Program-made: the position numbers and the translations under genes
In this document: positions 3,144 through 57,780 of the stretch, one piece after another
How positions within the stretch are numbered: position 1 is the first letter of the stretch
How the letters are laid out: each line of letters opens with the position of its first letter
Notes under the pieces: model-generated
What the model was told of the DNA's origin: nothing
Seen by the model: the letters and a program-made list of their open reading frames with translations, nothing else
The model's database searches: none
Assembly: GCF_000143415.4 (NCBI RefSeq)
Contig: NW_003314261.1
Location: 5,792,360 to 5,856,359 of the forward strand
DNA length: 64,000 nt
Origin: Selaginella moellendorffii
Taxonomy: Eukaryota > Plantae > Lycopodiophyta
Reading direction: 5' to 3'

Positions 3144-3822
3144 TCCCAAGTTACGGTGGTAGCCCAGGCGGCGGTAGCGTTGATCCAGGCAGTGGTAGCA
3201 TTCCAACCGTGCCTTCCAGCGGCGGCATTCCCTCTAGCGGCGGCATTCCTACTGTTCCTTCCATTGGTGGTGGCACTGGCGGCATTCCTTCCACTGGAAC
3301 TCCTTCCTCCGGTTGCTCTTGCGAGTAAGTTTTCATGGTTTTCATGAGCTTGGGCTTGCTTGTCTTGCTCGTTTCCTTCGTGGCCTTTGCTCGTTTGTTC
3401 CATCTTTCACTCCTAGATCTTCTGTTTGTCTCGTTCTTGATATCGATATTGATATTCTATGGTCTGGTGGTTGTGATATGGACAGCTTCTGGGCTGCTCA
3501 CGTTAACTCGTGGCCGGATCCACTCCAGCTGATCTCCACCGTCTCGGCCGTGTTCGGGGGTCTCGCCGGGAACACTTTCGGACCCAGCACCACGCTTCTC
3601 ACTGCGCTGGAGACGAGGAGGTCGGATCCTTACAGCCAGCTCCTCCGCCAAGGCACCGCAGCCATGCTCAACGCCTACTCTCGTCCAAACTTCCAGTACA
3701 CCCCTCTTGCCGTTCGCAACCATCTCAACGCCGCACTCGTCTCTCCCCAGGCCGCCGCCGTGCAAGCCGCCAAGTTTGCCAACGCCAACCGAGGATATGG
3801 CGTGAATACCGTCTGCACATAA
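2663..3822 (+). CDS. PDF1: Protodermal factor 1 (PDF1)-like secreted Gly/Ser/Pro-rich cell-wall protein; 2 exons (2663-3324, 3486-3822)
   Basis: Signal peptide MASLSSLLVIACIASAALA and a repetitive G/S/P body. Splicing GT 3325 to AG 3485 gives CSCDFWAAH...LLTALETRRSDPYSQLLRQGTAAMLNAY...AAVQAAKFANANRG, which matches the PDF1 C-terminal domain (CDYW...LSNTRSD..GALYREGTAS.LNS...QA..F.LANEG). Confidence 0.85.
2860..3150 (+). repeat. 72-bp (24-aa, GSVPSTGGGGGGYGGGSPSSGSGS) tandem repeat plus (GGCTCC)n within the PDF1-like CDS
   Basis: ctccgtcccaag recurs at about 2911, 2983, 3055 and 3139. Confidence 0.9.
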
Positions 3823-9460: not shown

Positions 9461-9904
9461 AAGTTTTTGCTACTACAGCGATAATTCTTTGACAGAAAAA
9501 TCATAAGCTTGTGTGAGCTCTTTGACCGTTGATGCAAACCAGATAAGATGCCATCCTGGCCATTGGATCATTTACGTGCCCTAATTTATGATTTTGGGCC
9601 AGATATTTTCCCTTACATGGCCATTTGTCGCCGTCGATGGCCATCAGCGGACGGCCCAGATACCGCCACGTCTGCATGACCCCGACGCCTTAAAGCCCTG
9701 CTTATCCCCTAGAAGGCATTTTGTTCTTCCCTCTTGGTAGAGGGCGCCAAGGGTTTTGAGGCGCTCGCGTAACGCCGGCGACGATTCCATTGCGAAGGTA
9801 AGAAGGATTGTGGAAGGATTTAGATGCATTGTGTAGCTGGAGGCCGGATTGGAAAATGCGAGCCTGATTTTGGTGTTGTTCCTGTTCTAGAGAGGAAAAG
9901 AGCT

Positions 9905-11019
9905 ATGGCGGCCTCGTGTATTTCGCTCTCGTCTACGGCCATTGGCGGTGCCGCGGCTCTGGCGGCGCCTCCCAGAGCCATGGCGCTGTGCATCGCTGGG
10001 GTTTCGGTGCCGTCGAGGCCCCTTTCTCTCTCGCTGGGCGAGACCTTCCATCTCGGTGCCGTACTATCCAGGAGAAGACCCCTAGAATTTGTGGCCAAGT
10101 CGTATGGTGGGTACGGAGCCGAGTCGATTGACAAGGAGGATTGGGCACCACCTCCGCCCAATCTCAGTGACTTGCCCCCGGAGCCATCGGAGCCAGTGGA
10201 CAAGGAGTTCGTGGTGCCAGAGCCCGACGAGAGGGACTTTGGGAGCTTTCGCAGCGAGCCAGCGCCCAACACCAAACTTTACGTCGGGAACATTGCATGG
10301 AACGTCGATAGCAAGATGCTGGCAGACTGCTTCAATGGCGTGGGCATCACAGAACTGGAAGAAGTCAATGTGAGTACCCTTTTCTCTGTTCCTTCCATCG
10401 TTTTCATTCAACTTAGTTGCTAAGATCTTTCTTTCTCTTGTGCTTTGTAGGTGATGTATGATCGGATGCTTGGAAAGAGTCGCGGTTTTGCCTTCGTCAC
10501 TCTCTCCACGGAGGATGCTGCGAAGACTGCCATCGAGAAACTTGATGGTCATGTAAGCGCTTATCATTGCATCTCAGTTAGAGCAACTGCGTGATCCTTC
10601 TTCCAGGAACTCGAGGGGCGGCCTTTGAGAGTAAACTACCCGCAAGTTCCCCGAGGAGGCGGAGGCTTTGGCGGTGGTTTTGGGACCAGACCGAGCATCC
10701 CAGCGAACCCGGCCAAGTGCTTCGTCGCCAACATCCCGTGGTCCGTGGACGACCAAGGCCTGCAAGAGTTTTTCAGCTCGCACGGAACGGTGGTAGACTG
10801 CCGGATTCTAACCGATGCCGAGAGCGGGAGGTCACGGGGGATTGGGTTCGTCACTTTTGCCACCCCAGACGAGGCCAACAACGCCATCAGCGCTTTGGAT
10901 GGAGCAGTAAGTTCGATCGATCTTTCCTTTGGTTTGTGAGTTCTCTTGGCTCACTCGTTTTGCTCCAGGAATTGGGAGGTAGATCGATTCGCGTGGCTTT
11001 GGCGACTGGAAGGCAATGA
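9905..11019 (+). CDS. Chloroplast ribonucleoprotein (cp29/cp31/cp33 type, two RRM domains)
   Basis: Ala/Ser-rich transit peptide, acidic region, RRM1 KLYVGNIAW...KSRGFAFVT, RRM2 KCFVANIPWSVD...RSRGIGFVTF...LGGRSIRVALA. Confidence 0.92.
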
Positions 11020-11273
11020 GCGACGATCACAACCAGCTGACAATGAAGGAAAGATGGAATGGCGCATTTCCATGCAAGAGGAATGGATCGAGTTTTAGTG
11101 AGAAAGTGTCTTAGAGAAAGAGCATGTCTACATTGCTATGATGGTTTGTAGATTTTTTTGGGATCAAAAACAGTCGCAAATGGTTTTCGGTTAGTCAAGC
11201 GTAATCTTTAAAGGTAAATGAAATAACTAATTAAAAATACAAATTAAAACTATGACGATGCATTAAAGTTAAT

Positions 11274-11347
11274 CGCTAGAAGGAGGGCTCGAACCTCCGA
11301 CCTTGTGGTTAACAGCCACACGCTCTGACCAACTGAGCTACTCCAGC
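11274..11347 (-). tRNA. trnN-GUU: tRNA-Asn (GTT), nuclear plant type
   Basis: Reverse complement GCTGGAGTAGCTCAGTTGGTCAGAGCGTGTGGCTGTTAACCACAAGGTCGGAGGTTCGAGCCCTCCTTCTAGCG: intact cloverleaf, A and B boxes, GTT anticodon, T-runs downstream. Confidence 0.97.
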
Positions 11348-11365
11348 ACATTTGAACAAGCGTGA

Positions 11366-12269: not shown

Positions 12270-13864
12270 TCACGAAACTTTCATCGTCACCTTCATCCAC
12301 TCGTAGACGAAGTAGCTCAAGGCCGCCGACGGAAGAACCTGGAGAACGCAACACATGAGCAAAAGAGAAATCAAAGAGCTCCCAAACCTGGAGTGTGCTG
12401 GGAAATATTCCAGCGTAGAGAGCTCCAACACCACCCCGATTCACCAGCCCCTGGATCGTTGGCATCAAACCGAGCCTGCTCGCTGCGCTTTGCAACTGGA
12501 GATGCCTCCTCACGACTTCCAGGGGATAGGTCACCGTCTCGGCACAAGCACCAGCGATGGCACCGTAGAGCAGCGTTCTCAAAGGCCCGAGCTCCATCTG
12601 GTCACTCCCTTTGCTGCCACTCATCCTCCTTCGCTGCTCTTCCTGGCCAGCAGGAGACGCAAGATAGTTTGTCTTGAGGATGTCGTAGACACCGTAGAAC
12701 ACCGCACCAGCCGGGGCCATGCTCACGATCGCCGGCACAATCCCAGCGTAGAGGGAAGTGAAGCCTTGGCTGGTGATTATGTGGCGGAAGCAGCCGGAGA
12801 TCCCTCCTAGTGCGTCGCCTCCCTGAGCAACAAGTCTTGTTCGAATCTGGAAGAAAGACCGATCAACTCAATCCAATAAAAAACTAGACTTCGAGCGAGA
12901 AGAACTTACAGTGTCCATTGGGAAGCAGACTATGGTGGCAAAGACCCCGGCAGCGGCCCCAGCCGCCAACTTCTCAAGTGGCGTCACGTCTTTTCTCCCA
13001 GTCACGGTCGTGATTCTCTTGCGAATCGTGTCGTACGCATAGAAGTTGATGGACTTGAAGGGCGCTGTCCGGATGAGGTTGACGAGGTTGCCCTTCCAGA
13101 AGCCTTGGACTCCCTCCGACGCAAGAATCGTCCTCACCACATCCATCGCATCAGACGTGGCTCCACGTACGATGTACTCGAGCTTTAGCCTCTCAAGTGG
13201 CGCCACGAGAGTTCTAGAAGACAACAAAGACCAAGAAAATCGCGAAGTTAGAAAGATTCAAGTAGGAAAAGTATAAGGAAAACTGAGGAGAAAAACCACA
13301 CCTGGAGATACACGCTGACAAGGCTCCGGCCAAGAGATGTTTGGACGTCTTCAAAGACCCGGCCTTCAAAGACTGGGAGTAATCGCTGCTGGAACTTCTC
13401 TTCTCTTGCCGCTGGGTGGTGGTGGCGATGGAGATGGATTCATCCGCGCTGTGCTCCAAGTATTCCAGAGATTTTTCCAGAGATCTTTCCTGCGCTTGAT
13501 GAGCGTTGATCCTCCTGCCAAGCTTGCTGCTACCGTGGATAGCAAACCCCAATGCCGATGACCACGCGCTGGAATTCGCCCTGCTCGAGAGCTGGCGCTT
13601 GCCGGATTCCGCTATGGACACCGATGCCAGGCAGTAGCTGGCGGAGCTGGCGGAGCTGGCGGGCATGGATGGAAGCAGGGACGATAGCGATGACGCGGAG
13701 AATGGCGATGGCAGGAAGCATTGCAGCGGATCGCAATCGCGGCCGGGGAGGAAGCATCGCCACGACGGATCGTCGGCCCCGCTCAGCGTGATGAATGCGA
13801 GCTCGGACGATGCAAAGATCGATGCCGATCGGCTTCTGGCGCAAGAATCTACATCGTAGCCCAT
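12270..13864 (-). CDS. Mitochondrial carrier family protein, BT1-like adenine nucleotide transporter (BTL2/BTL3 type)
   Basis: KHLLAGALSACISR|TLVAPLERLKLEYIVRG, GFWKGNLVNLIRTAPFKSINFYAYD, GAVFYGVYDILK, ELGPLRTLLYGAIAGACAE..TYPLEVVRR, last exon VLPSAALSYFVYEWMKVTMKVS*. Confidence 0.9.
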
Positions 13865-15724
13865 CGAAATATTGCCCGCCCGGCCACTTGGGGTGGATCA
13901 CAGCAGAGATCGAGGGAATGCTGCCGAGACCCAAGGAAGAACCCTAAAGATCATACCCGAGGAGCGCCGCGCGGAGAGAAGAAGGATCTAAATTCTGCCA
14001 AGACCAGCCGCCACAACCGACGCCATCGCGATCGCCTTTCCCCATTCTCTGCCCGCGTGGGTTCCTCGCATATGGAACACATGGGATACTTTAATCGGCC
14101 ATCGCCGGGCCCTCCTCGCCCTAACGGCATATCCCACGCGCGGCATATTCCGCTAGCGCGCAAAAGTGGTATAATTTTCATTAGTGATGGCGGGCCAAGA
14201 ACCCTAGCGCGAGGACGCCGTCGCGACAGCGATGGATGATTTTCGCGTGCCGGGCGCTGGCACGGACAATGCCGCCTCGGATCCAAGCCACTGGCGCTGC
14301 TGATTTGAGGTATGTTGCTCTTGCCACATCTCTTGTCGCGTTGCAAGGCTGCGATGCAGTGATTTCGCTCTCGAATTCCTGGCTGATAGCATGGGGAGGG
14401 GGAAAGAGACCGCTGCCTGGTCAGTCCGTCGTGTGTTTTCTTTCCTCCCTCTTGTTTGACTCTTCCTCTCTTGTGCGTCCTTTTCCTTGCCTGCCAAACT
14501 TCCAGTTGCGAGGCTCTGAGAGACATGATTCCATGGGCAGCGCCAACCAGATACGAATTAATCAATCCCTTCTCTGCCGATGCCGCCGCCACAGCAGGAG
14601 CTGACTTGGGCCACCTCGGCGGGATGTGTCCGCATCCATGGAGGAGAGAAAGGATTAAGAAACGCAGGCATGCCAATCAACCCCCCGGTCTGGCAGCAGC
14701 GACCAAGCGCGAGGAAAAGAAAAATTTATGGCTGCCAACCAAGCAAGCGTCAAACAAGAGGTTTTTTTTTTGCTTTTGTTCTTGGTGTTCTTTTCGAGCT
14801 CTAAGTTTCTTGTTTCTTGTTTCTACTTACTTTCCTTCGTCTTGTCTCTCTGTTCACAGCTTCTCGGATCCAGGAGAGAGAGAGAATGGCGCTTCCTTTT
14901 CTCGGTCTTTTTATATATATAGTCTACGGGCTACGTATGACTCTCCTCCAGCAAATTGGTCCACCCTGTGCTGAAGCCAAAAGGGAAAACAATTGCTATA
15001 GCATATGGCAGGCATGTTGTGGCTCGGCTCCTACAGGGATTTAAATACTCGCAGCCCCAGCTTCTTTATTGGACGGACAAGAGGTGCGTGGTTTGTATGG
15101 CACTAGAGGCAGCGATGTGGTTCCTTTTTGTTGTTTTACGAAGAGGTCTCAGTCTCTCTTGCTTTTCTTTTGCAGGAGAGGGGACGGGCGGAGCCTTCTT
15201 TCCGCATAGATACGCGCAACTTTCAATAACTTGGTGAGTGCTACAGCTCTGTTCTTGACCAGGAAGAAGCTAAGTTAGCTCCTGCTTCTTGCATAGCCTT
15301 TAAGCATTTTTTTTTTCTCCATTCCATTATCCGTGTGGACTGCAACAGTCTTTTGGTTTGCTTGCGAGGTACCAGGGGCAGGGAGCTATATATTGTGCTC
15401 TAGGCGCGGATATGATAATGGCCTAGTCCAGCGTATTGTGCGAGTTTCGGCTGGTGCCGCTCAATGGGCATGCCTTCCAATCCTGGTACACACTGTGGGT
15501 CTTGGGCAACTCTTCATGTGCTCGGGGATTAAACAAGCGCTTAACAAACGCCGAAAAGTTGACAATGACGAGGAAGGAACAACGACTGGTAATCTTGCGG
15601 TACTAGCGCCATCTGCGACCGGGAATTCATATCTGAGGAGCTGGGAACTAGCTGTTACCGCAACAGTTTCTCCCTCTTTATAAGGCAGCCCGTGCTGTCT
15701 TCTCCACTTTGCTCGGGTCGGGTT

Positions 15725-18079: not shown

Positions 18080-20063
18080 ATGAACGAAGCTCGGCATCGC
18101 CAGAGCGGGTACGTGGTTGGATTGAGCGAGATTTTGTTCTTGAGAGTATTCTTGATAGCTTATAGCCTTGATCCAGGGACGAACTTCATGAATTTCTCTC
18201 GGGTTCGAGAGACGAGAAGAGGCACCAAAGAAAAAAGGTGGGATGCCACGAGAAGATTGGACCGAAGGCGCAGCTACTTTCGAGCGCATTCTTGTTTGCG
18301 TTCCTCGTTTTGCTGTTTCTAGGTACGTTCTTCAACAGAAAGATCGTTCTGGACACTCCATTGCCGAGGTACTTTACAAACTCAAACTGAAATGATGAAA
18401 GATTGATTGATCCACAGGCACGGGTCGCACAAGAAGCTCATCTCGTCGGAAGATGAGCAGCGCACGAAGCTTGTGCCGAGCAGCGACAAACAAGTGCTCA
18501 AATTCCTCCAAGGGTCTCCGGAGATTGATTCGATCAAGTTGCAGAACAACGGGTTCTTGAGGATCGGGCTGGTGAATTTTCCAAAGCCGGATGTTGCAAA
18601 GTGGAAGGCTCTTGGCGGAGGCCGAAAGCCGGTACTTTTTAGCATCGACAAAAAGAGAGATTTTTCCTGGTCGGCTTTTTTCCCCGAGGCCATCGACAGA
18701 GACGAAGAAGTCCAGAACAGAGAGTGCCCGGACATGCCACTGCCATCGGTTCCAGAAGATCTCAAGCTCGACTTTGTTGTGGCGAGAATACCGTGTGGCG
18801 AATCCAACTTCAGAGACATCGACCGCTTGCAGGCTGCGGTTTCTGCTGCTCATATTTCTCTCAAAACTGGCGCCTCGCACATCATTGGAGTAAGCGATTG
18901 TATGCTTGATCCAAACGTTTTTAAGTGCAAGGAGCTTGTCCGGCAAGAGAAAGGTGTTGGGCTTTACAAACTCGATCTGGAAAGGATTGGAAAGCTACTG
19001 AGCTTACCAGTTGGCTCTTGCAAGACTGTTCAAGTTCCAACGCTGACAAGTAAGCAAGCTTTATTTGTCACTCTTAATTTTGTGATTCTGATTCTCTCGT
19101 CTTTGTTTGTAACTCAGGTGAGCATACTGTTTCTCGAGAAGCTTATGCGACCATCCTCCATTCCGTCAAGTCTTACGTGTGTGGAGCGGTGCTTCTCGCT
19201 CACAGCATCCGAAAGACCGGCTCGACTCGAGATTTAATTATGGTTATAGACCAACACATAAATCTCGAAGACAGGCAGGGGTTAGAAGGTGCTGGCTGGA
19301 AAATCCATCACATTGAAAGGATCAGGAACCCGAGAGCTCGTCCAGACGCTTACAACGAGTGGAACTACAGCAAGTTCCGGCTATGGCAGCTGACGCAGTA
19401 TGACAAAGTGGTGTTCATAGACGCGGACGTGGTGGTGACGAGAAACATGGACTTCCTCTTCGACTTACCGGAGCTGTCCGCGGCCCGCAACCACAAGAGC
19501 GTTTTCAACTCCGGAGTGATGGTGATAGAGCCGTCCAACTGCACTTTCAACTTGTTGGTGGATGGGATCTCTCGGATCAAGTCGTACAACGGCGGGGACC
19601 AAGGCTACCTGAACGAGATCTTTACGTGGTGGCACAGGCTTCCCAGGAGCATGAACTTTCTCAAGCACTTTGACGACGATGCCGAAGAGAACGAGTACAA
19701 GATGGAGCTCTTTGCCGCCGAACCTCCGGTGCTGTACGCTGTGCATTTCCTGGGAAGAAAGCCGTGGCTCTGCGGGAGGGGCCCCGACTGTAACGCGAAG
19801 ATCTCGTCACAGAGGATGTTTTCCAACGATTTCGTGCACTCCAAGTGGTGGAGCTGGCATGATGAAATGCCGGTGGAGCTACAGCGGCTGTGCCGGATCA
19901 ATCCAAAGAGAAGATTGTCACCACCGGCTGTCCATCAGGTTTGTTCTATATTTCTTTCATTTTGTAAACCTGAGAGCTCTGTTCGCAGGCACAAGCATCC
20001 AGCGAAAAGAGAAGATCAAGTTTTTCGAGATTTAAAAGGAAAACACACCCGGTTACACAGTGA
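18080..20063 (+). CDS. Glycosyltransferase family 8, xylan glucuronosyltransferase GUX/PGSIP-like, paralog A (divergent C-terminus)
   Basis: Exon 1 MNEARHRQSG, TM helix in exon 2, LPVGSC, REAYATILHS..YVCGA, AYNEWNYSKFRLWQLTQYDKVVFIDAD, FNSGVMVIEPS, SYNGGDQGYLNEIFTWWHR. Confidence 0.9.
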
Positions 20064-20207
20064 AGGTTCTTCCCCTTTAAATCCTTTTTCCCTCTCTCGC
20101 TCCAATTCAATTTTCGGAGCTCTAGAACAGTAGGATCATCACCAAGAGGGGTAAAACGTCCCTCTCTTTTTTGACTCTATATATTCTTTCTTTTTCCCCG
20201 ATTTCCC

Positions 20208-20693
20208 CGAGAAAGAGCTTCGTTGCTACTTCCTCGAGACGCTCATGGAGAACGCGAGAAGTGGGAACATTGAGGAGTTCATGTCCGAGATGGATGTTGT
20301 TGAATTTGAAACCGTGGCCTCTTCCATGACCTCGTTGCTGCGCTCATGCAAATGAAGTCGAAGGCTACTCTCCTGTTTCTTCCTCTCTACTAGAGATAGT
20401 GAGATGGCTACTTAGCTTTTCTGAGGAAGGAAATCGCATCGGGTGACATGCCTTTGCAAGAGACTTTCGTTGCCGTCACGGGACTGCTTGGACGTGCTGG
20501 ACTTCGTGATCCAGCGTAGAAAATTCTCGGAGCTATTGAAAGTGCAAACCTGGATACTTGGGGTACGTATCTCATTCTTGCGGACTTTGTAGAGAAGTAG
20601 ATACATTTGCTTTCATTCTTCGCTATCTCTTTCGTTGTTGACTGGTGCTGGATGCTGCGCAGAGGAGATTTTCAATGCTGGATACTTGAACGA
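20208..20693 (+). pseudogene. Decayed fragment copied from pTAC3 (donor about 46390-46910), introns retained
   Basis: gagaaagagcttcgttgctacttcctcgagacgctcatggagaacgcgag...ggatacttgaacga aligns to the donor with indels. Confidence 0.9.
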
Positions 20694-20696
20694 TGG

Positions 20697-20965
20697 CAGT
20701 AGGACCACGCTGACGCATTCATCGAGTTAGATCCACGATGACAGAGTCAGTAGAGGGATTACACTTGCCAAGACTAAGTCCCCGAAGCACGCTGCTCAAC
20801 GCTGCCGCCAAGCAAACGATTAGATGAAAGGAAAACCGAAATTTCGAGAACATGATTTTACGCCTTTATCCTGCGCTCTATAAGAATATTCCACATTTTA
20901 AATTTGAAACTTTTTTTGGCGCATTGTTCCATTACAGGGCGATCTTTCTTTGATTCGCGATTTCC
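20697..20965 (-). other. Inverted, heavily deleted copy of the upstream/5' region of GUX paralog B (donor about 25757-26422)
   Basis: Blocks such as ttgccaagactaagtcccc, aaaccgaaatttcgagaacatgat and gatctttctttgattcg are reverse complements of 26288-, 26143- and 25764-. Confidence 0.85.
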
Positions 20966-22341
20966 AGCTAATGCTTACAGCGCCAGAGAAAACTCCGGGA
21001 AAAAAATCGGGACGATGGCCATGGATGGCGATTGCTTGTACGCGGATGCCTAGCTCTGACTCGACGGCGAAACTTCTACCCCGGGCAGTCGAGTGCAGCT
21101 TGCAACTTCGAGCGGAGAAGAGGATTGAGAACCGAAGTCAAAAAAGGGGGTATTTCCCAGTTCCTGCGACAAAAGCTTTAGAATCTCTCCTAGAACAGAT
21201 CAAATGTTGCGAGCTCACCACTGATGTAGCTCGTCAAGAGGCTTTAGCCTTAAAATAAAAGTAAACAAGCTAGATGGAAGCTAATCTTTCAAATTCTTGC
21301 CTCCTCAAAAACGCTTTCCTCGCGCCATCTGGTGACCAATATAACACTTTGTCGCCCATCTGCAGCATGCCCTCAATGAAAGCTCATGAAGATCGATTGC
21401 TCAAGTTGTTGGCCCCGGGGAGATCATGCCACTACAAACATCCGATTAGCAAGCAGCAGCTAACAAATGACAAGACATACTTCGTCATTGATGTAGAGAT
21501 CCCCAACTAGAAATAATTTTTTGAAGTACTACTTGCTTGATAAACCATGCTAGTATTTGAGTTTATGCAAGCCACTGTTCAACTGTGCCATTAACATTTC
21601 CTCTTTCAAAGGATGCAAACTTCTTTCCTTATAGGATTCTTTAAACATAAAGCGTTGGCAAAACATAGAACATAACTATTATATACCAATACCTTTGTAC
21701 AAGTTGTAGTTGATTTGGTTGCTTTGAATGTTTGCTATAGCATGTATGTTGAGCATAGTGTATGTAAACTTCGTACCACCAAAAACAAGGAGGTACATCC
21801 AATTGTAGTATCTAGAGGAGATGTTCTTTCGTATGTCTACTTGGGCATAGTTGAAGTTCTGAAGACGAAACTCACACCTTACTTGCATTCTGCAATAAAT
21901 GCACAGAACAGCTTATTCCTCACACTGAGTGAAGAGTCTTTGCACTTTAGTGTTCTGAACTTGATATCAGTCCTAATTGCTTCCATGTTGTCAATCACAT
22001 TCACCTCGTGGTCCACAGTGAACCCCTGCGAGAAGAGGTGTCCTGCCAGAAAAATTAGGACACAACTACAATGAGAAAACTTAGTTTAATACACTAACTA
22101 AGTTGCCGTCATTGGACTCTGGTTGAGTCTCCCTAGACGGGCTCCAAGATTGACTGCCACCACCACCCGAGGATGGCCCCTCTTCCATCTCATTTCATGC
22201 AGTACCCTGCATTACAAAATGAGGAAATTACAAATCAATCAAACTGTGGCAAGAACTACTTACCTCGTTGCATTCTAAAAACCTTCCAAGTCGGTGGCCT
22301 AATTCTCCTCTTGCAAGCGCTTCAAAGCAAGCAAACTCTTT

Positions 22342-23128
22342 GAGAGATGGACTCTAAGAGCCTCAGGGTGTGGGAGCTGTGCCAAGAGCTTCATTGGTGA
22401 CATCTTGTCATGACAGGGTCTATCGTACGCTTCTTTTTTAATCTCTTGACATGCATGTTCGATCTCTGTTTAAAGTGGGTCTACAAACACGCCAACTTTG
22501 CTGGGTGTAGAACAGGTAAGCTACACCTGGGATGTCTAATTATAGATTTCATGGAATTTGAGTCTTTTTTCCTTTGTAATAGTCACCATGCTTGGTAATG
22601 CGATCAGTGAGTTGCAGCGAGGCAGTTATAAGCGCAAGACCAAGAGCAGCAAACTGGGAAATGAGGGGATTAACATGATCAGGAAGAGCAGCAAAGTCGC
22701 AAAAATGGGCGAGAGCAGCAAACCGGGGATCAGGGCAATCAGGAGGAGCAGCAAGGTTGCAAGAACGGGCGAGAGTGGCAAATTGAGGATTAGCGTGATT
22801 AGGAGGAGTGGCAAGGTCATAAGAACAGGCGAAAGTGGCAAATCATTGTTCTTGTGACTTTGCCATTCCTCCCAATCGTGCTAATCCCCTCATTTCCTGG
22901 TTTGCTGCTCTTGGTCTTGCGCTTACAACTGTCTTGCTATAGCTCATTAATTTCATTTGTCGATCCTGGTGACCTATTACAAGGGAAAAAAGCTGATCAC
23001 AACTCAAACGTTATAAAATTTGTAACTGGACATTACTAATTCAGTCTTGCACCCCATTGTAACAAAATGCCACCAACAAAGCTCTTGGCATAACTCCCAC
23101 ACCCTAAAGCTTTTAGAGTCCATCTCTC
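22342..23128. repeat. Nested foldback: outer arms about 22342-22419 and 23051-23128; inner arms about 22600-22702 and 22852-22957; loop built from three 60-bp tandem units
   Basis: aagcgcaagaccaagagcagcaaac pairs with gtttgctgctcttggtcttgcgctt; gagagatggactctaa pairs with ttagagtccatctctc; at(c/t)aggaRgag recurs at 22678, 22738 and 22798. Confidence 0.85.
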
Positions 23129-23171
23129 TCGAAGCTCTAGGGTTTAGTAGAGAAAACCTAAAAGGAAACTT

Positions 23172-23893
23172 GCCATTGGATCATTTTGTCCCCTTTTATT
23201 GCCATGTAAACGGACGGCACGTCTGCATGAGCGGTTCTTCCCAAGGGGTTTTGAGGCGCTGGTGTGACGCCGGCGACGATTCCACTGCGAAGGTAAGAAG
23301 GATTTAGATGCATTGTGTAGCTGGAGGCCGGATTGGAAAATGTGAGCCTGATTTTGGTGTTGTTCCTGTTCTAGAGAGCTATGGTGGCCTCCGCTCTCTC
23401 GTCTACAGCTATTGGCTGCGCCTCCCAGAGCCGTGGCGTTGTGCATCGCTGGGGTTGTCGAGGTCCCTTTCTCTCCCATCTCGGTGCCGTACTATCCGGG
23501 AGAAGACCGGCCAGTGGACGTGGTCGAGAGGGGCTTTGCCAGCGCCCAACACCAAGCTCTACGTCGGCAACATTGCATGGAACGTCGATAGCAAGATGCT
23601 GGCAGACTGCTTCAATGGCGTGGGCATCACAGAACTGGAACAAGTCAACTCTTTTCTCTGTTCCTTGCTAAGATCTTTCTTTTTGTGGTGCTTTGTAGGT
23701 GATCTCTTGGAAAGAGACGCGGTTTTGCCTTCGTGACTCTCTCCGCAGAGGAGGCTGCGAAGACTGCCATCGAGAAATTCAATGGTTATGTAAGCGCTTA
23801 TCATTGCATCACAGTTAGAGCAACTGAGGCTTTGTGATCCTTCTTCCAGGAACTGAACTACCCGCAACGTCCCCGAGGAGGAGACCGAGCAAC
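23172..23893 (+). pseudogene. Decayed copy of the chloroplast RNP gene with its upstream region (donor about 9559-10700)
   Basis: MHCVAGGRIGKCEPDFGVVPVLE and PAPNTKLYVGNIAWNVDSKMLADCFNGVGITELE are shared; introns are retained; there are many deletions and frameshifts. Confidence 0.92.
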
Positions 23894-23896
23894 CCT

Positions 23897-24309
23897 CATT
23901 CCTACCGTGCCTTCCAGCGGCTTCCGTTGGTGGCGGCATTCCTTCCACTGGAACTCCTTGCTCGGGATGGTTTCCTGCAGCTTGGGCTTGCTTGTCTTGC
24001 TCGTTTCCTTCCTGGGCTTTGCTCGGTTGCTCCATCTTTCGCTCCTAGATCTTCTCTTTGTCTCGTTCGCAGCTTCTGGGCTTGCTCACGTCAACTCGGC
24101 CGTGTTCGGGGTTCTTGCCGGCCACACTTTACCACGCTTTTCACTGCGCTGGAGACCAGGAGGTCGGATCCTTACAGCCAGCTCCTCCGCCAAGGCTCCG
24201 CCGCCATGCTCATCCAAACTTCTTGTCCGTAACCATCTCAACGCAGCGCTCGTCAAGCCGCCAAAGTTTGCCAACGTCAATAATCTGAGGATATGGCGTT
24301 CTGCACATT
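23897..24309 (+). pseudogene. Decayed copy of the 3' part of the PDF1-like gene (donor about 3198-3820)
   Basis: TALETRRSDPYSQLLRQG is shared, as is the intron sequence gcttgggcttgcttgtcttgctcgtttccttc. Confidence 0.92.
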
Positions 24310-24699
24310 CCAGAATTTTGTTTGTCTTGATTCGACCACCAATTCATTTGCTAATTGTCTGTCCCCTGATTCAATGTTTTAGTGGGATGATCTTCCTACT
24401 GCCGCGAACATGACCCATCCGACTTCACGCAGGGCATGTTGCGGATCGTCGTGGGTGACAAAGTGCTGTCTTGGTCACCTGATGATGCAAGAAGGAAGCA
24501 TTTCGAGGAGGCAGGAATTTCGAAGATTGACTCGTGATGCATACTCCGGCTGATTCATTGCAGCGTCTAAGGTGCAAACTTTCCGTTTCTGCATTGATGC
24601 TTTTCCTTTTTTCAGGCAAATGTCTGGTGTGTGAGGAGATCAAAGGCTGTTCCCAAGTGAGTGGTATGTGGCGAGAGGAGTTTATTGGTCTGGAAACTC

Positions 24700-25697
24700 A
24701 TCCGAAAGCCGGTACTTTATAGCATCGACCAAAAGAGAGATTTTTCCTTGGTTGTGGTGAGACGAATCCAGCTTGAGAGACATGCTCTCAACACTGGCTC
24801 CTCCAAATTCACGCACATCGTTGGAGTGAGCGAGTGTATGCTCAATCCAAATGTTTTTAAGTGCAAGGAGCTTGATCGGCAAGAGAAAAGCTGGGCTTTA
24901 CAAACTTGGTCTTGGAAGGCTACTGAACTTACTGGTCAGGTGGCTCTTGCAACTGTTCAAGTTCCAACACTAACAAATAAAGCTTACTCTTAATTTTGTG
25001 CTTCTTCTCGTCTTTGTTTTCAACTCAGGTGAGCATATTGTTTCTCGAGAAGCTTACGCGACCATCCTCCATTCCGTCATTGCTTCTCGCTCACTCACAG
25101 CGAGATTTAATTCTGGTTATAGACCCGAGCTGCGGAAGTACAGCAAGTTCCGGCTGTGGCAGCTCAAAGTGGTGAAGTGGTGTTTGTGGTGGTGACGAGA
25201 AACATGGACTTCCTCTGGAGCTGTCCGCGGCCCGCAAAACCACAAGAGCGTTTTAACTCCGGAGTAATGGTGATAGAGCCATCCAAGTGCACGTTTAACA
25301 TGCTGGTCGACGGGATCTCCCGGATCAAGTCGTACAACGGCGGGGACCAAGGCTACCTGAACGAGATCGTTTCAACGATTTCGTGCAGTCCAAGTGGTGG
25401 AGCTGGCATGATGAAATGCCGGAGGAGCTACAGAGGCTGTGCCGTGTCAATCCAAAGAGGAGATTGTCACCACCGACTACTGTTCATCGGGTTCGTTCTA
25501 TATTTCTTTCATTTGTAAACCTGAGAACTCTGTTCGCAGGCACAAGCATTGATAGAAAAGAGAAGATCAGATATAAAAAGACAACTCACTTTAACCGGCT
25601 ACACAGTGATCAAAGGTTCTCTTCTTTTAAAGTTTTATTTTCCTCCTCTGTCGCTCCAATGCAACTATCTGGACCATCACCAAGGGGTCCCTCTCTA
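24700..25697 (+). pseudogene. Decayed, multiply deleted copy of GUX paralog A (donor about 18620-20167)
   Basis: FNSGVMVIEPSKCTFNMLVDGISRIKSYNGGDQGYLNEI, SKWWSWHDEMPEELQRLCRVNPKRRLSPP, plus the last intron and 3' region of paralog A. Confidence 0.92.
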
Positions 25698-26748
25698 ATT
25701 TCCTCGCAGTGGTGGTACTTCATTCTCTAGCGTTATATCTCTTTGATCGAATGATAGAAATCACGAATCAAAGAAAGATCGAGGCGTTGGAACATCTCCC
25801 TCGAATGATACTCCGATCGATGATAGAGAACCACCGGCAAAAGATTCCATTCTCCCCAAAAAAGGGCGCTAAAAGTTTCAAATTTGAAAAGTGGAATATT
25901 CTTATAGGGCTCCTTTTCCCGGCCATGGCACTTTCGCGTTTGGTGGCCTTTACGGCCCCATTCAAGCCCTAGCGCGGAGCTGGCATTTGTCGAGCAGCGC
26001 GGGGGTAGCTGCGGCATCGTCGTCGTCACAGCGCCATTGTTTTTCTAGGGTTTCCTGGCACGGCCGCTCGACGGCTATGTCGCGCAGGATGGGGCGTCGC
26101 CATCAGGTAGGCACGGGAAGCAAACAAAAGCAAGGAATAGTGATCATGTTCTCGAAATTTCGGTTTTTCTTTCATTGTTTCGCTCGATCGCGCACGCGTT
26201 GATCCGGTCGATGCCCTGGAAATCTTCATCTAATCGTTTGCTTGGCCCCACGGCAGCCACAGCGGCAGCGTTGCTTGCGTGTTTCAACGGGGACTTAGTC
26301 TTGGCAATCAAGGTAAGTGTGATCTCTCTACTATTTGACAAAGAATCTCTCGTCATCGTGGCTCACTAACTCTCTTCTTTTTGGATTTTAGGCTCGATGA
26401 ATGCGTCAGAGTCGTCCTACTGTAGTAGCGTCACTCCAACTCTACCAGGTACTTCCACTTCTCGCCTCCAACTTTTTCTTCTTGGATCTTCCTTCTTCCT
26501 TCTTTTCTGTTGCTGTTTTTTACGTCGGTGAAGTCTCCTGTCGGTGTCACTCGTTTGTTCGATCGGTCCCTCATTTGCTGAAAAGAAAAAAAAAGCATGG
26601 CTGGGAAAGGGGCAGCGGCCCGCATTGGCTGAAAGTCTCTTGGGTTATAAGGTTGGCAATTACTACTTGATTGATTCAATTCTAGAAGCTCGAGCGATTA
26701 TCCTTTTCGCTAGAGCTGCCTACATTTGCATTTTTCGGGATTCCTGAG

Positions 26749-43340: not shown

Positions 43341-45805
43341 ATGGAGAAGCCGGGGCATCTCAAGGCGGTGGACGTGGTTTGATCGTCGAGGGCTTGATTC
43401 TCGTCTCATTCTTGCTCGATTTGATGCCAGGTGCTGCTTACAGCTCATGAGGCGGAGCACATTGTGGAGAATCTCAAGTGTTTCTCGGTGAAAGAGGCAT
43501 GGATTGTCTTGCATTTCGTTTTTCTGTGAAGTTTTGCTGTCAGGTGGGATGTCCTGCGTGGATGAAGCAACACCGGAAGCTAGAAAAGCTTAATCTCCAG
43601 GTTTGTCTAGATCGCGATCGTTCTGACGCGTGATTCTTTTTGTTTCTTTTGATCAGGCCCATTATAACACTATAGCTCACTGTGACGAGTTCATTATGGA
43701 GGTGAGATCTCGATTCTTGTGTAGATAAACACTTGTTTGATCGTCTTTTCTTCTTTCTTTGTGCTACAGGCTTTGCTTTCGTTTGAAAAGCTAGGAGTTT
43801 TGATTCATGAGCTTCTTGTTATCGAGGTAATACAAATATCTATCTATCTATGGAGCTCACTCGATCGTTGTGACAAGCGTAGATCTGGAAAGAGAAGGTC
43901 TTGCCTCATATAATGAAGCACTTGGCTGGAATGTCATCTACAATAAGGCTGAGCCTGATTTTCTATCAGGAAGTAACAGTTATAAAGTTGTTTGAGGTGC
44001 GATAGACGAAATTTGGAAGCCCGTAGTGTTAACAAGAGTTAGTTTCCCTCGCAGATCATGCTCTTTCACAAGGAAGCGTGTAAAGCACTGGGTAGCAGCA
44101 ACCTTCTTGAGGTATGGTTTCCACTTCTTCTTTTTTGTTGTTATAACTTTTTGTTTCTCGCAGCTTGTTGATTATTGCTATCGAAAACTGGTGTATCTCA
44201 ACACAAATGCTTCAAAAGACGCCGCTTATAAAGGTTTTGCTTAGATCCTTCAAAAAATGCTGAGTCTTAAGAATGGATATTTACCTTTGGATCTTTGGAT
44301 CAATAGAAAGAACTGCCCAGCAAGTCATGTCTCTAAAGCCAGAACTTGAGATGGAAGAAAAGGTTAGTGTCGATTTTACGCAATTCGCTGCCATAGTTGA
44401 ATTGACTTAGAGAGCTTCGGTGACTTCCAGGCTGGCGAGATAGAGTTTGGCTGTGCCATCGCGTCCTTGACAATTTTGCGGTACATGCTGTCTGCTGTTG
44501 CTGATAACATAAAACGTGAACGTTTCTAATCAAAGGCATGAGCTGATTCACTCTCTGACTTTTGATCATTTCTTTTTCTTGTTTTTGTTTATCTAGGTAC
44601 TTCAGCGATTATGTCAATGATCTTCCTCCAGGAGTGATGGTTAGATCGACAATCAGGTGTTATTATATCATTCTGAGCTATGAATGCACAGGCCCGGCTG
44701 ATTGACACGCATGATGTGATTATGGGGCTTGTCAACCTTGTGGAGTCCCCCCCATGGGAAAGACGAAGAAATCTTAAAGCCAAAGTCGTGGTACGTTTTA
44801 CAAAGTATCAGCTCAGAACATTTTTCTTCTTTTGAATTTGGAATACTAGACAGAAAAGTATGAGGAAGGAAAATGGGTTGAGGTTCCTCCACAAGATCGG
44901 TTCAGGATTTTCAAGTCTGAAGCACAAGTAATTCTTAATTCCTCTCGAATTGTCAAGGCGATTGAGTGTCGATCTCTGCAGGTCTGGCTGGCATTGAATA
45001 ATCTTGTTGCAGACATTCAGTGCCGTGCTAGATACACCTACGATGATTTCCGCCAGGCTCAAGTCTTGAAGGTAGAAGGTTCTCTTCCTTGTCTTCTGTC
45101 CTGCCTGACACTGGGATCCACTCCAGCTGCGAAAGTATCTGAATGAAATGGTGCTGGAGCAGCTGCCGGTTTTGAAGGATTTACAATGGGTAACACTGTA
45201 GCTGAAATCACCGATTCAGCATTTGTGTTTATACAGGCTTTAGAAGAAATTTCTCTCAAAGTGTTTGCGACGGAGGAGGACCGAAGAACTGCACACTTGA
45301 TCATGGAGGAGGTACGAATACCAGAGATCTCGATGTTACAAAGGCGTTGACATTGACGACATTACTTCAGATACCGGAAATGAGAACAGCGCTGCTTGCC
45401 AGACGAGACTGGAGTAAGCTTAGTTTTCGAAAAAAGAAGTTGGCAAATGCTCGTGTCCTCTTGTTTTCTCAGGACAACTTGCTGAAGATCAGATAGAGAT
45501 GATACGATCCGACCCACGATTGAGTGGCGATTCCCCGGCAGAGCTGGACGAACTAATGCGGATGTTCCAGTTTGGCGAGTCCATGGATACGCCCAAGTGC
45601 GCAGCTTGCGGCGCTCCAGCGGAGAAACGATGCTCACGCTGTAAAAATGATTGGTGAGCTTGCAAAATTCGATCGATTCCAAGAGAAATTTGTAAAACGT
45701 TTTTGCTCTTCCAGGTATTGTGGTCGGAGCTGCCAAGTCGCAAACTGGAAGATCCACAAGAAGATATGTGACTTGGTCTCAAGCGCTAACACGAAGAGCT
45801 CCTAG
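43341..45805 (+). CDS. ZMYND10: Zinc finger MYND domain protein 10 (axonemal dynein assembly factor), many micro-exons
   Basis: Spliced exons EAEHIVENL..|VGCPAWMKQHRKLEKLNLQ|AH..DEFIME|..EKLGVLIHELLVIE|IWKEKVLP, LVDYCYRKL, LVESPPW, EAQ|VWLALNNL, LNEMVLEQLPVLKDLQ; MYND finger KCAACGAPAEKRCSRCKNDW|YCGRSCQVANWKIHKKIC. Confidence 0.9.
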
Positions 45806-45903
45806 CCTAGCGACGCTTTAGCGCCAACGTTTGAATTTAAACGTGGAGCTGACGGGGCTGCTGACGTGGATCCTACGCGGGTGCTGTCCCCAAAACCCTG
45901 GCT

Positions 45904-48900
45904 ATGGCCGCGCTAGCGAGCTCGTGCTGCTGCGCGTTTAGGTTCCGCCGGGAGAAATGCCGCGCGGTTCTCGGGTGTGGCGAGCGGCGCCTGGCGCCTG
46001 GCAATGCCGCTGGATTGATCGTATTGATGGGATGCGTTCCTTGCGAAATAGGCGCCTCGCGGCTTGTTCTTGTGAAAGCGTCGGCGGCAGGGGCATCCAG
46101 TGATGAGCCACTACCCGCTGGTAAGTAGTTTCGATTCGACTGCGCAACGATCTTACTAGTCATAGTTCTTGGATTTAAGATCCAGCAGCTAAACGCTCGC
46201 GCTCGACGAAGAAATCCAATGTGGAAGGGGGAACCCAGGCTCCAAAGAAGGCTTCTGCGAGGAAGAAGAAAACCACCGATTCTTCGGAAGAACAGGCTGA
46301 GTCGCTAGGGGGTGGTGGAACTTCTACCATCCAGCGAGACAACGAGTTTGCTGCGACCAGGAGCTTGTACAGGAAGGTGATGAATGCCGAGGAGAAAGAG
46401 CTCCGTTTCTACTTCCTCGAGTCGCTCATGGAGAACGCGAGGAGTGGCAACATTGATGGTGTGGAGGAGGTCATGTCCGAGATGGACGTTGTTGGATTGA
46501 AACCGGGGCCTCGATCCTTCCATGGCCTCGTTGCTGCTTACGCTCAAGCGAATGACGTTGAAGGAGCGGTAAGTTTCTCTCCTTTTTCTTCCTCTCCGCT
46601 AGAGATTACGAGATGGCTACTTATCTTTTCTCTTTTCTTTCAGTGCAGCTTCAGGCTTTGAGGAAGGAAATCGCGTCGGGAGAGACGCCTTTGCAAGAGA
46701 CTTTCGTTGCCGTCGCGAGGCTGCTTGGACGTGCTGGCCTTCGTGATCGAGCGGAGAAAATTCTCGGAGCTATTGAAGGTGCAAACCTGGATACTCGTAC
46801 TGCTTGGGTGGTGACTTGTGGTACGTTTTTTATTCTTCTTTATCTTTTCCGTTGTTGAATGGTTCTGGATTCTGCGCAGAGGAGCTTTTCAATGCTGGAT
46901 ACTTGAACGAAGCAAATGACCTTTTTATGAAAGGTGCAAATGGTGGTTTCAGAGCCAGTGAGCATTTGTACGACATATTGGTCGAGGAAAACTGCAAAAC
47001 CGGCAAGCATGGTGTTGCCATAAATATTTTGAGGTCGATGGAATCAAGAGGAAGGCTGGCCACTACCTTCCATTACAATTGTTTGCTTCTTGCTCAGGTA
47101 AAAGTTTTTAAAATCTTGGTTTCTATTTACACTTTTGACAGGGAAATGCCAATTTTCCAGACATTGCAGAAGACACTTTTGAAGAGATGCAGTACCTAAG
47201 ACGTGAGTCCATACGTTTTACGTGCTCAATGACTCACAAAGTGCCTTGTGCTTGCAGCGGACACGAAACCCGATACCGAGTCATTTAACCTTATGATACA
47301 AGCTCAAACACGTTGTGACAACGGAGAAAGGTGTGTTTGGTCACGCGTATAGAGATGCTAACGTCCTTCCATTCACAGGGTTCATGAAGTCATAGTGCTG
47401 ATAGGACACATGACGGAGCTGTATCCTCAAGTGAAGCCAAATGCTCGAACATATGCGTAAGTGAGTCTAATCATTATAAACATTTCCTGTTTCCTACGTT
47501 CGATATGCAGACTGATCGTTGAATGCTACGTGAAATTTAACTTCATGGACGAGGCAATGCGTCATTTTCGGGCTCTCACAAAATTATTCCCAGGTTCTCT
47601 ACACGTTCTCCATTGTGATGGGAAGCACGGTGATCCTCTCTCGCTGCTGATACGCTCGCTTTGCTTGGAAGGTAACTTGGAAAAAAAATGGATTCTGTGT
47701 TCATTGCTATTGCTTAAGCAGGTAGAATTGTACAGCTTGTCGAAGTTTTGGATTTGATGCTACAAGAAGGCCTGAAATTAACTCCAAGAGCTATGTTTAT
47801 GAATCGAAAGGGACGCACGTTGGTAAGCTCGTGGATTGAGCCCATGCAGGAGGAAGCAGACATAGGATGCGAAATTGATTTTGTTGCACGGTCAGTTTTC
47901 TTTCTTACAGTTTATTTCATGCTCTTGATACGAAGCTTGTAATTTGCAGTTACATAGCAGAAGGTGGTCTAACTGGCACACGGAGAAGATGGACGCCCGC
48001 TGCTCGTAAGGATCCAAACAGGATTCTACCCGATTATGATGGCTACAGATTTTCACCTCCAGTGGAGAAGTCTTACAAACAGTACTGCAGCATAAAGCGA
48101 CAAGAATATAAGCGAAAGCTGATCCATTTGTTGCAATTTGAAGGCGTCTATGCCTTGGGGGAAAATGCCAGGGAAGAAGAGTACACTGCAATACTAGAGA
48201 GGCTGAAAAAAGAGAACGTCCGGAAGAGACTTAGTGACGTTCGCAAGCCCAAGGCAGCAAGTAAGCTTTCTGTTGCTGAAATGAAGGAAGAACTTGAAGC
48301 TCAGGGACTTCCAACGGACGGGAACAGAAGGCTCCTGTATCAAAGGGTTCAAAAGGCGCGCAGGATAAATCTGGCCAAAGGAGCGCCTTTGTGGATGCCA
48401 CCGGAAGAAGAAACTATCGAAGAGGTCTGTCTTCTCAAGCAATTTTTTAAAATTCTTTTTCTAAGGCTTCCATCGTTGTATTGCAGGTAGATGAAGAGTT
48501 TGAAACAGTCTTGGCTAAAATAGATCTGAGAAACCCGAGACAACAATATCGACGAAAATGCTTTATTGAAGGAGTGGGACTTGAAAACTTGTACAAAGAA
48601 AATCCACGAATGGTGATCGAGGAGTCGGACAGCGAGATGGAGGAGGACGCTGAAGCAGAGTCACGAGAGGTAGAAGGACATGTAGTCAGGGAAGACGAAG
48701 AAGAGATTATTCAACCCGTTGACGGTGGTGAGGTTGATGAAACAACAGAAGCATCGAAAGCAACAGACGACGAAGACGAAGAAGAGGAGGAAGTCGTGGT
48801 AAGTGCTCCAAGATTCCTTCTACATTTGTGAGGATCACATTTTCGCTTTTGTAGGAGGTGAGCCCTGCTGTAGTTGGCAATGAACCAGCGTCGGACAACA

Positions 48901-56327: not shown

Positions 56328-57201
56328 TTAAATCTTGGTGGCGATGTCGAACGCACACACTGGGCGGGGCCAACTCGAGCTGGGGTGTGTATGGCAGCAT
56401 ATTGGCCTTGAGCTCCCTTATCATGTCCAGTTCTACGTTAAGCGCTGTCGCAGTGGACCTGTTGGGAATCATCAACAGAGCACCACCACTTGTCTGTAGA
56501 AACAGACACACAAAAACTATTATGAAAAAAGAATAACGTAAATAACTTCAGAAAAAAAGTAAGAAGGAAGCTGGCGATGTTGTTTTGTTTACCAGAGTTC
56601 CTGGGTTTTGGCTGTTCAGAGCCGAGATGTAAATCGCAGGCTTGGTCCCAACGTTGAGCTGAAAGTGCATCGTTCGTCACAGGAAAACCATGAGATCGCC
56701 TGGGTACAAAAGGTTAATGCGTGATACTTCTGGAAAATCACATCGTATTCAAAGATCTTTACGAGATCAAGATCGAGAGATCGGTCTTATTTCCTACCGC
56801 GTGTATCAACGAAGCCAACTTGAAGCTCGAAGCCAACGACCACCGGAGACCATGGTCGAGTGCTCCGAACCTCGAGGATGCGTGTGTGGGACATTGACTC
56901 CACAAGGAACCACATGAAACTGGACATAAGTTAATCCTTGAGACCTTCGTAGAAACAAACGAAAGAACAAGCCATGAGTTTTGAGAACTGAGAAAAGAAT
57001 ACGTGATTCCTAAGATTGTCGTGTTGATTGCAGCCACGAACACCACCGGGTCTATTGCGAACATCCCTCTTAACATCTCGTAGCACGAAATCGCAAAGAG
57101 CTCCCTACCCCGCGAAATCTCGCAGTGGATCGGGATTGGCCGCGACTAACACATTCAAGCACCCAAGATCACCACTGCCAACAAAGCTTCTTGAAATCCA
57201 A
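56328..57201 (-). pseudogene. Germin-like protein pseudogene, copy A
   Basis: ANPDPLRDF, CGVNVPHTHPRGSE, TMHFQLNVG. The start codon is lost, there is a 10-nt frameshifting insertion at 56828-56837, and there are in-frame stops. Confidence 0.85.
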
Positions 57202-57296: not shown

Positions 57297-57780
57297 TAAA
57301 AAGGAAAAGTAAGAACGAAATGAGGGAAGAGGGCATCGAGCTTGCATGCATGCATTCAAGAGAACGTGTGTTTTTGGAAAAAAATCTAATTCAAATTCCT
57401 TACAGCCTTCGAGTAACATATCTCGACTTTTCTCGTAGAAAAGGTTTTTAACCATTTGAAAAAGTCAGTTGGGGCATTGCAGGAATCCCAACGGACCACT
57501 AGCCATTACATTTGCTCCATTAAGTCAAGCTTCGGTGACACAGCGATCAAGTCGCTCACTACTCTCATCCTCTACCTAGTGGTTTTTGCAATAGAAACCA
57601 CTTGATCAACCACTACCCAAGCAATTCGCTGCAATGAAATCAGTAGGTACGAGACTTGGACGCGACCATTCTCTTGCTTCGAAACAAAGTCAGCCTTTAA
57701 ATATAAGTGTTCCCATCAAAAAGCCAAACAAGTCAAGGATGGATCACTTTAGTTACAGTGGTCAATGTAAACAAAGGACC

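Follow-up and report, generated by a model that had tools for sequence, protein, structure and literature searches.

We analyzed a window of 64,000 nucleotides (nt) from Selaginella moellendorffii (GL377565.1 from position 5,792,360; haplotype A), in which a mosaic of 5490 nt lies between two genes for cell-wall enzymes, GUX-A and GUX-B (the latter a 99% match to SELMODRAFT_91619). The locus of XP_002960604.2 is contained in the window as an exact substring. The mosaic is a string of copies of neighboring DNA around a core that holds a broken gene, which we call X, and a fold-back palindrome (Table 1). Haplotype B (GL377577.1, from the same assembly project) was compared over the window equivalents of 0.2 to 38.8 kilobases (kb) and 42.8 to 60 kb, and over 7 kb further left. 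Blocks were found by self-BLAST and BLASTN of the window, and substitutions and indels were counted on gap-tolerant alignments. We find that the mosaic is real, old, and dead. It is a local duplication of a complex but known type that has since been worn down and reshuffled, and its core died later.

A preliminary description of this locus named five copied blocks with local donors, and all five were recovered: a pTAC3-type gene (PPR and SAP domains), the spacer upstream of GUX-B, a 28-kDa chloroplast ribonucleoprotein (cpRNP) gene, a PDF1-like gene, and GUX-A. The main blocks matched their donors at BLASTN E values from 1e-115 (pTAC3) to 1e-38 (PDF1), and the small fragments of the spacer copy, which is badly eroded, at 1e-4 to 1e-9. 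A sixth, small zf-MYND piece had been missed; its alignment score is 58 to 70 against a shuffle maximum of 30 to 35, and its donor sits beside the pTAC3-type gene. The locus is also not simply stitched from five loci, as had been proposed, because blocks with local donors sum to 2966 of the 5490 nt (54%). The other segments (X, the palindrome with its extension R, the fragment Y, and the segment U) have no donor in the window, its haplotype B equivalents, or the 7 kb further left.

Both haplotypes carry all six donor genes intact and in the same order, so that each template was gained as a copy and the donor was left in place. About a dozen genes lie between the donors, and self-BLAST found no trace of them in the mosaic. 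We judged the locality of the donors by sequence identity that includes introns and promoters, together with protein look-ups, in which the cpRNP cluster held two alleles and no further members. Introns and promoter DNA are kept in the copies, unlike in processed (retro) copies, which lack introns. The copying was therefore DNA-based, as first described, and alignments likewise bear out that the order of the blocks differs from that of their donors.

Table 1. Segments of the mosaic, their donors, and other features, in window coordinates (UTR, untranslated region).
Feature	Coordinates	Strand	Donor or remarks
Left bracket: 3' two-thirds of intact GUX-A and downstream DNA	18622–20205	+	Donor of the GUX-A copy
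Dead copy, 5' part of PPR+SAP (pTAC3-type) gene	20209–20693	+	Donor 46392–46910 (46177–47000 counting haplotype B); 6 deletions
Inverted copy of the GUX-B promoter/5' UTR spacer, with much deleted	20697–20964	−	Donor 26422 to 25757; third spacer copy
U, about 190 nt	20965–21150	−	In both haplotypes; no donor in the DNA compared
Small inverted zf-MYND piece (last intron and exon), about 80 nt	21150–21225	−	Donor 45643–45754
X, nearly complete broken gene with introns	21225–22470	−	LOC112344805-type family; D...ExK motif; C-to-T hypermutated
Fold-back palindrome	22532–23040		Arms 80% complementary; 60-nt (20-codon) tandem repeat; C-to-T hypermutated
R, inverted duplicate of 22342–22419 (5' part of X)	23051–23128	+	Lengthens the fold-back
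Filler of 40 nt between R and the cpRNP promoter copy	23129–23168		Telomere-like/telo-box motifs on both strands
Dead copy of cpRNP promoter, 5' UTR intron, and first exons	23169–23895	+	Donor 9556–10701; 19 deletions; mostly lost in haplotype B
Dead copy of PDF1-like 3' part with intron	23897–24308	+	Donor 3199–3820; lost in haplotype B
Y, decayed fragment of the X family	24309–24701	+	About 79% identical to X 21283–21470, opposite strand; lost in haplotype B
Right bracket: dead GUX-A copy	24702–25696	+	Donor 18622–20167; 24 deletions; abuts the spacer directly
Conserved spacer (GUX-B promoter/5' UTR)	25700–26422	+	Haplotypes differ by 0.8%; source of two further copies
Donor: 3' part of intact PDF1-like gene	3199–3820	+	Name from the preliminary description; no Pfam match
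Donor: promoter and 5' part of intact 28-kDa chloroplast ribonucleoprotein gene	9556–10701	+	
Donors: 3' end of zf-MYND gene and 5' part of PPR+SAP (pTAC3-type) gene	45643–47000	+	
tRNA-Asn(GTT), behind cpRNP	11273–11348	−	
Decayed tandem germin/cupin gene copy	56325–56964 and 57778–58365		74% identity; region strongly haplotype-divergent
Gypsy-type integrase/chromodomain remnant	60789–63300		Lacking at this place in haplotype B; young exact local duplications (62413–62597 vs 63128–63300; 146-nt tandem at 62708–63002)

When both haplotypes are joined, the old order reads GUX-A, spacer (+), pTAC3 (+), spacer (−), U, MYND (−), X (−), palindrome, R, cpRNP (+), PDF1 (+), Y, GUX-A copy (+), spacer, and GUX-B. 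Two features of this order had been overlooked. GUX-A and the spacer are directly duplicated and form a bracket of more than 1.5 kb around the mosaic, and the mosaic has a polarity: all donors from the right (spacer, pTAC3, MYND) come before all donors from the left (cpRNP, PDF1, GUX-A). The left half of the string alternates in both orientations between two sites, at 25.7 to 26.4 kb and 45.6 to 47.0 kb, and the spacer is present three times. With five independent donors, the chance of such two-site clustering is about 0.03.

Age, erosion, and later rearrangement

Comparing block-to-donor divergence had been suggested as a check on whether the blocks arose together, and the values proved similar. 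Substitutions amount to 10.2% in the pTAC3-type copy (443 sites), 6.6% in the inverted spacer copy (256 sites), 7.1% in the cpRNP copy (717 sites), 7.4% in the PDF1-like copy (406 sites), and 8.4% in the GUX-A copy (946 sites). These five blocks are homogeneous (chi-square, P = 0.33), at a resolution of about 20% of the age. In the coding parts, synonymous differences per site (pS) are 0.11 to 0.14 in all four genes, and nonsynonymous differences (pN) are 0.062 overall. The resulting pN/pS of 0.48 would be expected of a copy released from constraint at its origin and a donor whose changes were mostly silent. The copies evolved neutrally and were dead from the outset.

Erosion has proceeded mainly by loss. 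The copies carry 75 deletions (1731 nt) and 19 insertions (119 nt), and small deletions have taken about 38% of each block. Deletion sizes range from 1 to 197 nt, most with 0 to 2 nt of flanking repeat. The notion that the locus is a compressed record of its neighborhood thus gives way to ordinary deletion erosion for the most part, and 46% of the mosaic does not come from the neighborhood compared.

Haplotype B also contains the mosaic, with deletions shared with haplotype A and its own divergence of 2.6 to 4.7%; there is no N in the mosaic sequence of either haplotype. Relative to the donor, the pTAC3-type copy has 26 differences common to both haplotypes against 7 and 8 private ones, and the GUX-A copy has 25 against 12 and 6. 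In the latter copy, 408 nt are deleted in both haplotypes, compared with 10 and 19 in one alone. Because most differences are common to both, the copying predates the split and is not an assembly error. It is approximately 3.6 times older than the haplotype split.

The second haplotype thus confirms the mosaic itself, but not its arrangement. In haplotype B, 20823–23441 is inverted, 23441–25063 is lost, and 80 nt are flipped inside the pTAC3 copy. We take the orientation of haplotype A to be the older one, since its cpRNP copy is continuous across 23441. Haplotype B in turn retains 430 nt that are gone from haplotype A, comprising a degraded duplicate of the spacer from upstream of GUX-B, right behind GUX-A (locus L001, 4434–4525), and more of the pTAC3 5' part. 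Within its pTAC3 copy are also about 185 nt of no known source (L001, 4565–4748). The young junctions of haplotype B have 2 to 5 nt of microhomology, and one holds a 46-nt filler that contains 13 nt of the nearby spacer. At least two inversions and several deletions postdate the haplotype split. Given these changes, and the erosion of the old junctions, neither the present order nor the junctions are a pristine record of one event.

Gene X, fragment Y, and the palindrome

X and Y are homologous to LOC112344805, which belongs to an uncharacterized family found only in S. moellendorffii. We considered this gene as the donor of X and rejected it as too distant, at 56 to 62% DNA identity. X was read as it stands, with its broken frame and its stops shown as X. 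It aligns to LOC112344805 with few gaps, and only 1 stop is shared in the 251 codons checked in both haplotypes; its breaks are mostly private to one haplotype (indels that separate the two haplotypes being so by definition), and one candidate frame break falls where haplotype B is deleted. X was therefore nearly intact at the haplotype split and had either lived long or arrived late.

The core also differs from the gene copies in how it mutates. Between haplotypes, X and the palindrome show transitions at 10 to 17% and transversions at 1.4 to 3%, with CG, CHG, and CHH sites alike, whereas transitions and transversions are about equal in the gene copies. Cytosine methylation is linked to C-to-T change, and the excess of such changes in X and the palindrome, together with its absence from the gene copies, points to methylation of the core alone. 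The 9.7% difference between the two haplotypes might suggest that their copies of X are paralogous. We rejected this, as the transversion rate (1.4%) is that of alleles and C-to-T changes make up the excess.

As to function, the X family carries a D...ExK motif, and its Atlas structure neighbors are weakly HSDR_N-like or fungal kinase-linked, with template modeling (TM) scores of 0.38 to 0.46. The family has no Pfam, PHROG, or PDB match; Pfam gave RE_Bpu10I at a weak E of 0.25, and AlphaFold single-sequence models have a predicted local distance difference test (pLDDT) of 32 to 34. Pfam searches of the intact relative (P0162/P0177) found no domain and no CR header, NTPase, or kinase partner. 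These weak hints make a PD-(D/E)xK nuclease fold a lead and no more. The intact spliced gene at L006 10001–11701 (P0177), from this spikemoss-only family, shows the same motif and a weak likeness to the restriction-endonuclease fold. In LOC112350944, the other allele of LOC112344805, a 76-bp inversion (L007, 11337–11412) cuts the product to 359 amino acids.

The palindrome folds strongly as RNA (z of −19) and reaches no Rfam family at gathering score. Its G-U pairs show a weak excess on the plus strand, 44 versus 25. Along one arm, at 22562–22850, an open frame of 20-residue repeats runs on both strands. We discarded a miniature inverted-repeat transposable element with TA ends as an explanation, because the arms run into X-derived flanks and carry the 20-codon repeat.

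Candidate origins of the mosaic

Our best single explanation, which we hold tentatively, is a multi-template copy event: a cycle with local templates, or a local n-jump. An old replication or break-repair accident would have switched template several times within one 45-kb neighborhood. Synthesis would have passed GUX-A into the spacer, moved to the MYND/pTAC3 boundary, and returned to the spacer on the other strand. It would then have taken in cpRNP and PDF1 and returned upstream within GUX-A, so that GUX-A and the spacer were re-replicated and bracketed the string. All copies would have been dead on arrival, about 38% of each block being lost later to small deletions, while X and the palindrome in the middle would have been silenced and hypermutated. 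Inversions and deletions with microhomology or filler, as seen for haplotype B, would later have altered the order. The enzymology is our inference, as is the assignment of the non-collinear joins to the first event. What speaks for this copy event is the direct duplication of GUX-A and spacer on both sides, the equal ages of the blocks, the pN/pS of 0.48, the two-site clustering, the lack of any trace of the genes between the donors, and an architecture that agrees with the definition of cycles and local n-jumps (PMC7025897).

Small-scale template switching is active in this genome. In the germin cluster, haplotype B holds a young patchwork of 0.9 kb (L005, reverse complement 13858–14750; window equivalent about 56667), composed of more than 10 pieces of 17 to 160 nt from within 1.5 kb, on both strands, at 94 to 100% identity, with 1- to 6-nt overlaps and short fillers. 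Likewise, a haplotype-specific inverted insert (L006, 7784–7914), lies 2 kb upstream of LOC112344805; its two pieces, 91 and 43 nt long, come from a neighboring gene at a distance of 1 kb and overlap by 3 nt where they join. A reach of up to 26 kb is not thereby demonstrated. The germin-cluster patchwork also offers a clean case for junction study. Serial template switching had been proposed from the outset; it stands as the leading explanation rather than as a demonstrated one, since the junctions are eroded, the order was later reshuffled, and a tandem duplication rivals it. Polymerase-theta insertion, named alongside it, fits the young fillers of 13 to 160 nt in haplotype B, but less so blocks of 0.6 to 1.5 kb from 7 to 26 kb away.

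Several observations weigh against a single multi-template event. Independent jumps would give the observed polarity once in 10, and a single large tandem duplication that was later reduced and scrambled accounts for it equally well. The old junctions have 0 to 3 leftover nt (40 nt from R to cpRNP) and no clear microhomology. The near-intact state of X when the haplotypes split also means that the locus does not have one age throughout. Young patchworks draw on templates no more than 1.5 kb away, not 7 to 26 kb. Scrambling continued after the split, and by our estimate approximately three further inversions are to be expected before it. Finally, the 7 to 8 templates needed here equal the longest strings in 2,559 cancer genomes (PMC7025897).

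A serious possibility is that the mosaic is the seam left by a single tandem duplication that spanned at least 44 kb, with breakpoints in PDF1 near 3.2 kb and in pTAC3 near 47.0 kb. The left genes would survive from copy 1 and the right genes from copy 2, and at least 38 kb of dead middle would have shrunk, through a few large deletions and many small ones, and been scrambled by later inversions and small duplications. Such a seam accounts for right-hand donors preceding left-hand ones, and the outermost donors are cut as it predicts, with only the 5' part of pTAC3 and only the 3' part of PDF1 present. Equal age and neutral evolution are predicted as well. The locus has undergone kilobase losses and inversions since the haplotypes separated, plants commonly carry tandem and proximal pseudogenes (PMC7935947), and the species is rich in tandem duplicates (PMC5750206). 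Order within each half is not collinear, however, and reaching it from a seam takes four signed reversals, and no fewer than two additional duplications to account for the spacer and X/Y/R. Nothing remains of the 19 kb between the spacer and MYND, nor of the genes between PDF1, cpRNP, and GUX-A, and X, U, and the palindrome are left unexplained. The multi-template and tandem readings differ solely in the number of switches in the first event.

We consider it unlikely that several separate local copy events accumulated over a short period, with a small tandem duplication of GUX-A and spacer as a dead zone that took up templated insertions singly or in pairs, and X and the palindrome arriving last. 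The block ages are indistinguishable (P = 0.33; pS 0.11 to 0.14), whereas this history leads one to expect a spread of ages and haplotype-specific blocks, and no large block is haplotype-specific. It would agree with the state of X, which is far less eroded than the gene copies and has haplotype-private breaks, with the slightly greater divergence of pTAC3 (10.2%) than of other blocks, and with young local insertions in two of the haplotype comparisons made.

More doubtful still is a causal role for X, as a restriction-endonuclease-fold (Crinkler/CR-type) nuclease, or the passenger of a mobile element, whose arrival or activity cut the locus, so that repair drew in neighboring DNA. X does lie where the half with right-hand donors meets the half with left-hand donors, was still almost whole when the haplotypes split, and has the fold-back alongside, and the core mutates like methylated transposon DNA. 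The D...ExK motif, the structural neighbors (TM 0.38 to 0.46), and RE_Bpu10I (E of 0.25) point the same way, and land plants have CR proteins with REase domains, which are tied to mobile elements (PMC5289972). Yet the fold is unproven, given the lack of Pfam, PHROG, or PDB matches and the pLDDT of 32 to 34. There are also no element ends or target-site duplication, and X may simply have inserted into sequence that had died before. The intact LOC112344805 occupies one and the same position in the two haplotypes and has no large patchwork within 10 kb.

The preliminary description noted no terminal inverted repeat, target-site duplication, or Helitron terminus, and we find capture by a Pack-MULE/Pack-CACTA element or a Helitron very improbable. 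Elements of this kind carry multi-gene fragments copied at the DNA level, and local hopping can take neighboring DNA (PMC8903248); the inverted spacer copy and its donor even resemble long terminal inverted repeats. The seeming right arm is the conserved GUX-B promoter, however, and no inverted repeat pairs the ends of the mosaic, although age may have erased short ends. In both haplotypes, no short target-site duplication was found at the ends, and the bracket of more than 1.5 kb stands there instead. The one weak Helitron hairpin-CTRR match, in haplotype A, lies inside the GUX-A copy and not at an end, and the insert has donors to its left and to its right. An assembly artefact can be dismissed, even though both scaffolds come from one assembly project: the copies differ from their donors by 8% substitutions and 94 indels, and haplotype B has the mosaic with shared deletions, 2.6 to 4.7% divergence of its own, and, like haplotype A, no N.

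Relation to known systems

The locus is dead DNA, and what it offers is a dated case of the making and erasure of local copies in a compact, deletion-prone plant genome. Across the two haplotypes, copying, the 38% loss by small deletions, inversion, and kilobase loss can all be seen in sequence. If local patchworks across the genome shared the bracket and the bias toward local donors, Selaginella would be a good test system, both for multi-template copying of the cancer type in plant germ lines and for a role of lineage-specific nuclease-like genes. That S. moellendorffii routinely repairs breaks by long-range local template switching, which would assemble multi-gene patchworks from donors tens of kilobases away, with lineage-specific nuclease-like genes such as X triggering the process or riding on it, seems to us improbable at present; this locus would then be one fossil of a genome-wide shuffling that is not known to have been described in plants.

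The mosaic shares features with several described systems. It resembles Pack-TYPE transposons and Helitrons (PMC8903248, PMC13317346) in its multi-gene DNA fragments, retained introns, and shuffled order, but differs in that its donors are the flanking genes and that terminal inverted repeats, a target-site duplication, and a Helitron end are absent. Maize transposition-induced re-replication, which yields Composite Insertions (Zhang et al. 2014, PMC4270019), likewise combines a tandem duplication with a kilobase insertion of DNA from both flanks. The maize insertions have Ac/fAc ends, 8-bp target-site duplications, and two segments, whereas we see neither such ends nor such duplications, and six or more segments. 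Filler DNA formed by synthesis-dependent strand annealing or polymerase theta (PMC3706897, PMC10923293) fits the young junctions of haplotype B and the small patchworks at L005 and L006. The main blocks, with 0.6 to 1.5 kb of donor DNA from 7 to 26 kb away, are far larger and more distant.

The closest parallels bear on the two leading explanations. Cycles of templated insertions and local n-jumps were defined by Li et al. (2020, PMC7025897), and in them the string returns and re-replicates a host segment. Together with fork stalling and template switching/microhomology-mediated break-induced replication (FoSTeS/MMBIR), they share with our locus a copied string, mixed orientations, a gain of template copies, a re-replicated bracket, and templates from one region. 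The mosaic differs in being a fixed, old fossil of the plant germ line, whose eroded junctions make microhomology and a single event not demonstrable, and in that part of its string is without a local template. Tandem or proximal duplication followed by fractionation (PMC7935947; Woodhouse et al. 2010, PMC2893956) also leaves neutral copies beside their parents and a strong deletion bias; our mosaic departs from it in its non-collinear order and orientation, and most of its deletions have flanking repeats of 0 to 2 nt. Deletion sizes are close, at 5 to 178 nt for short-deletion fractionation in maize (PMC2893956) and 1 to 197 nt here, and the erosion that we observe matches the 'bloat and purge' described in S. 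lepidophylla (PMC5750206).

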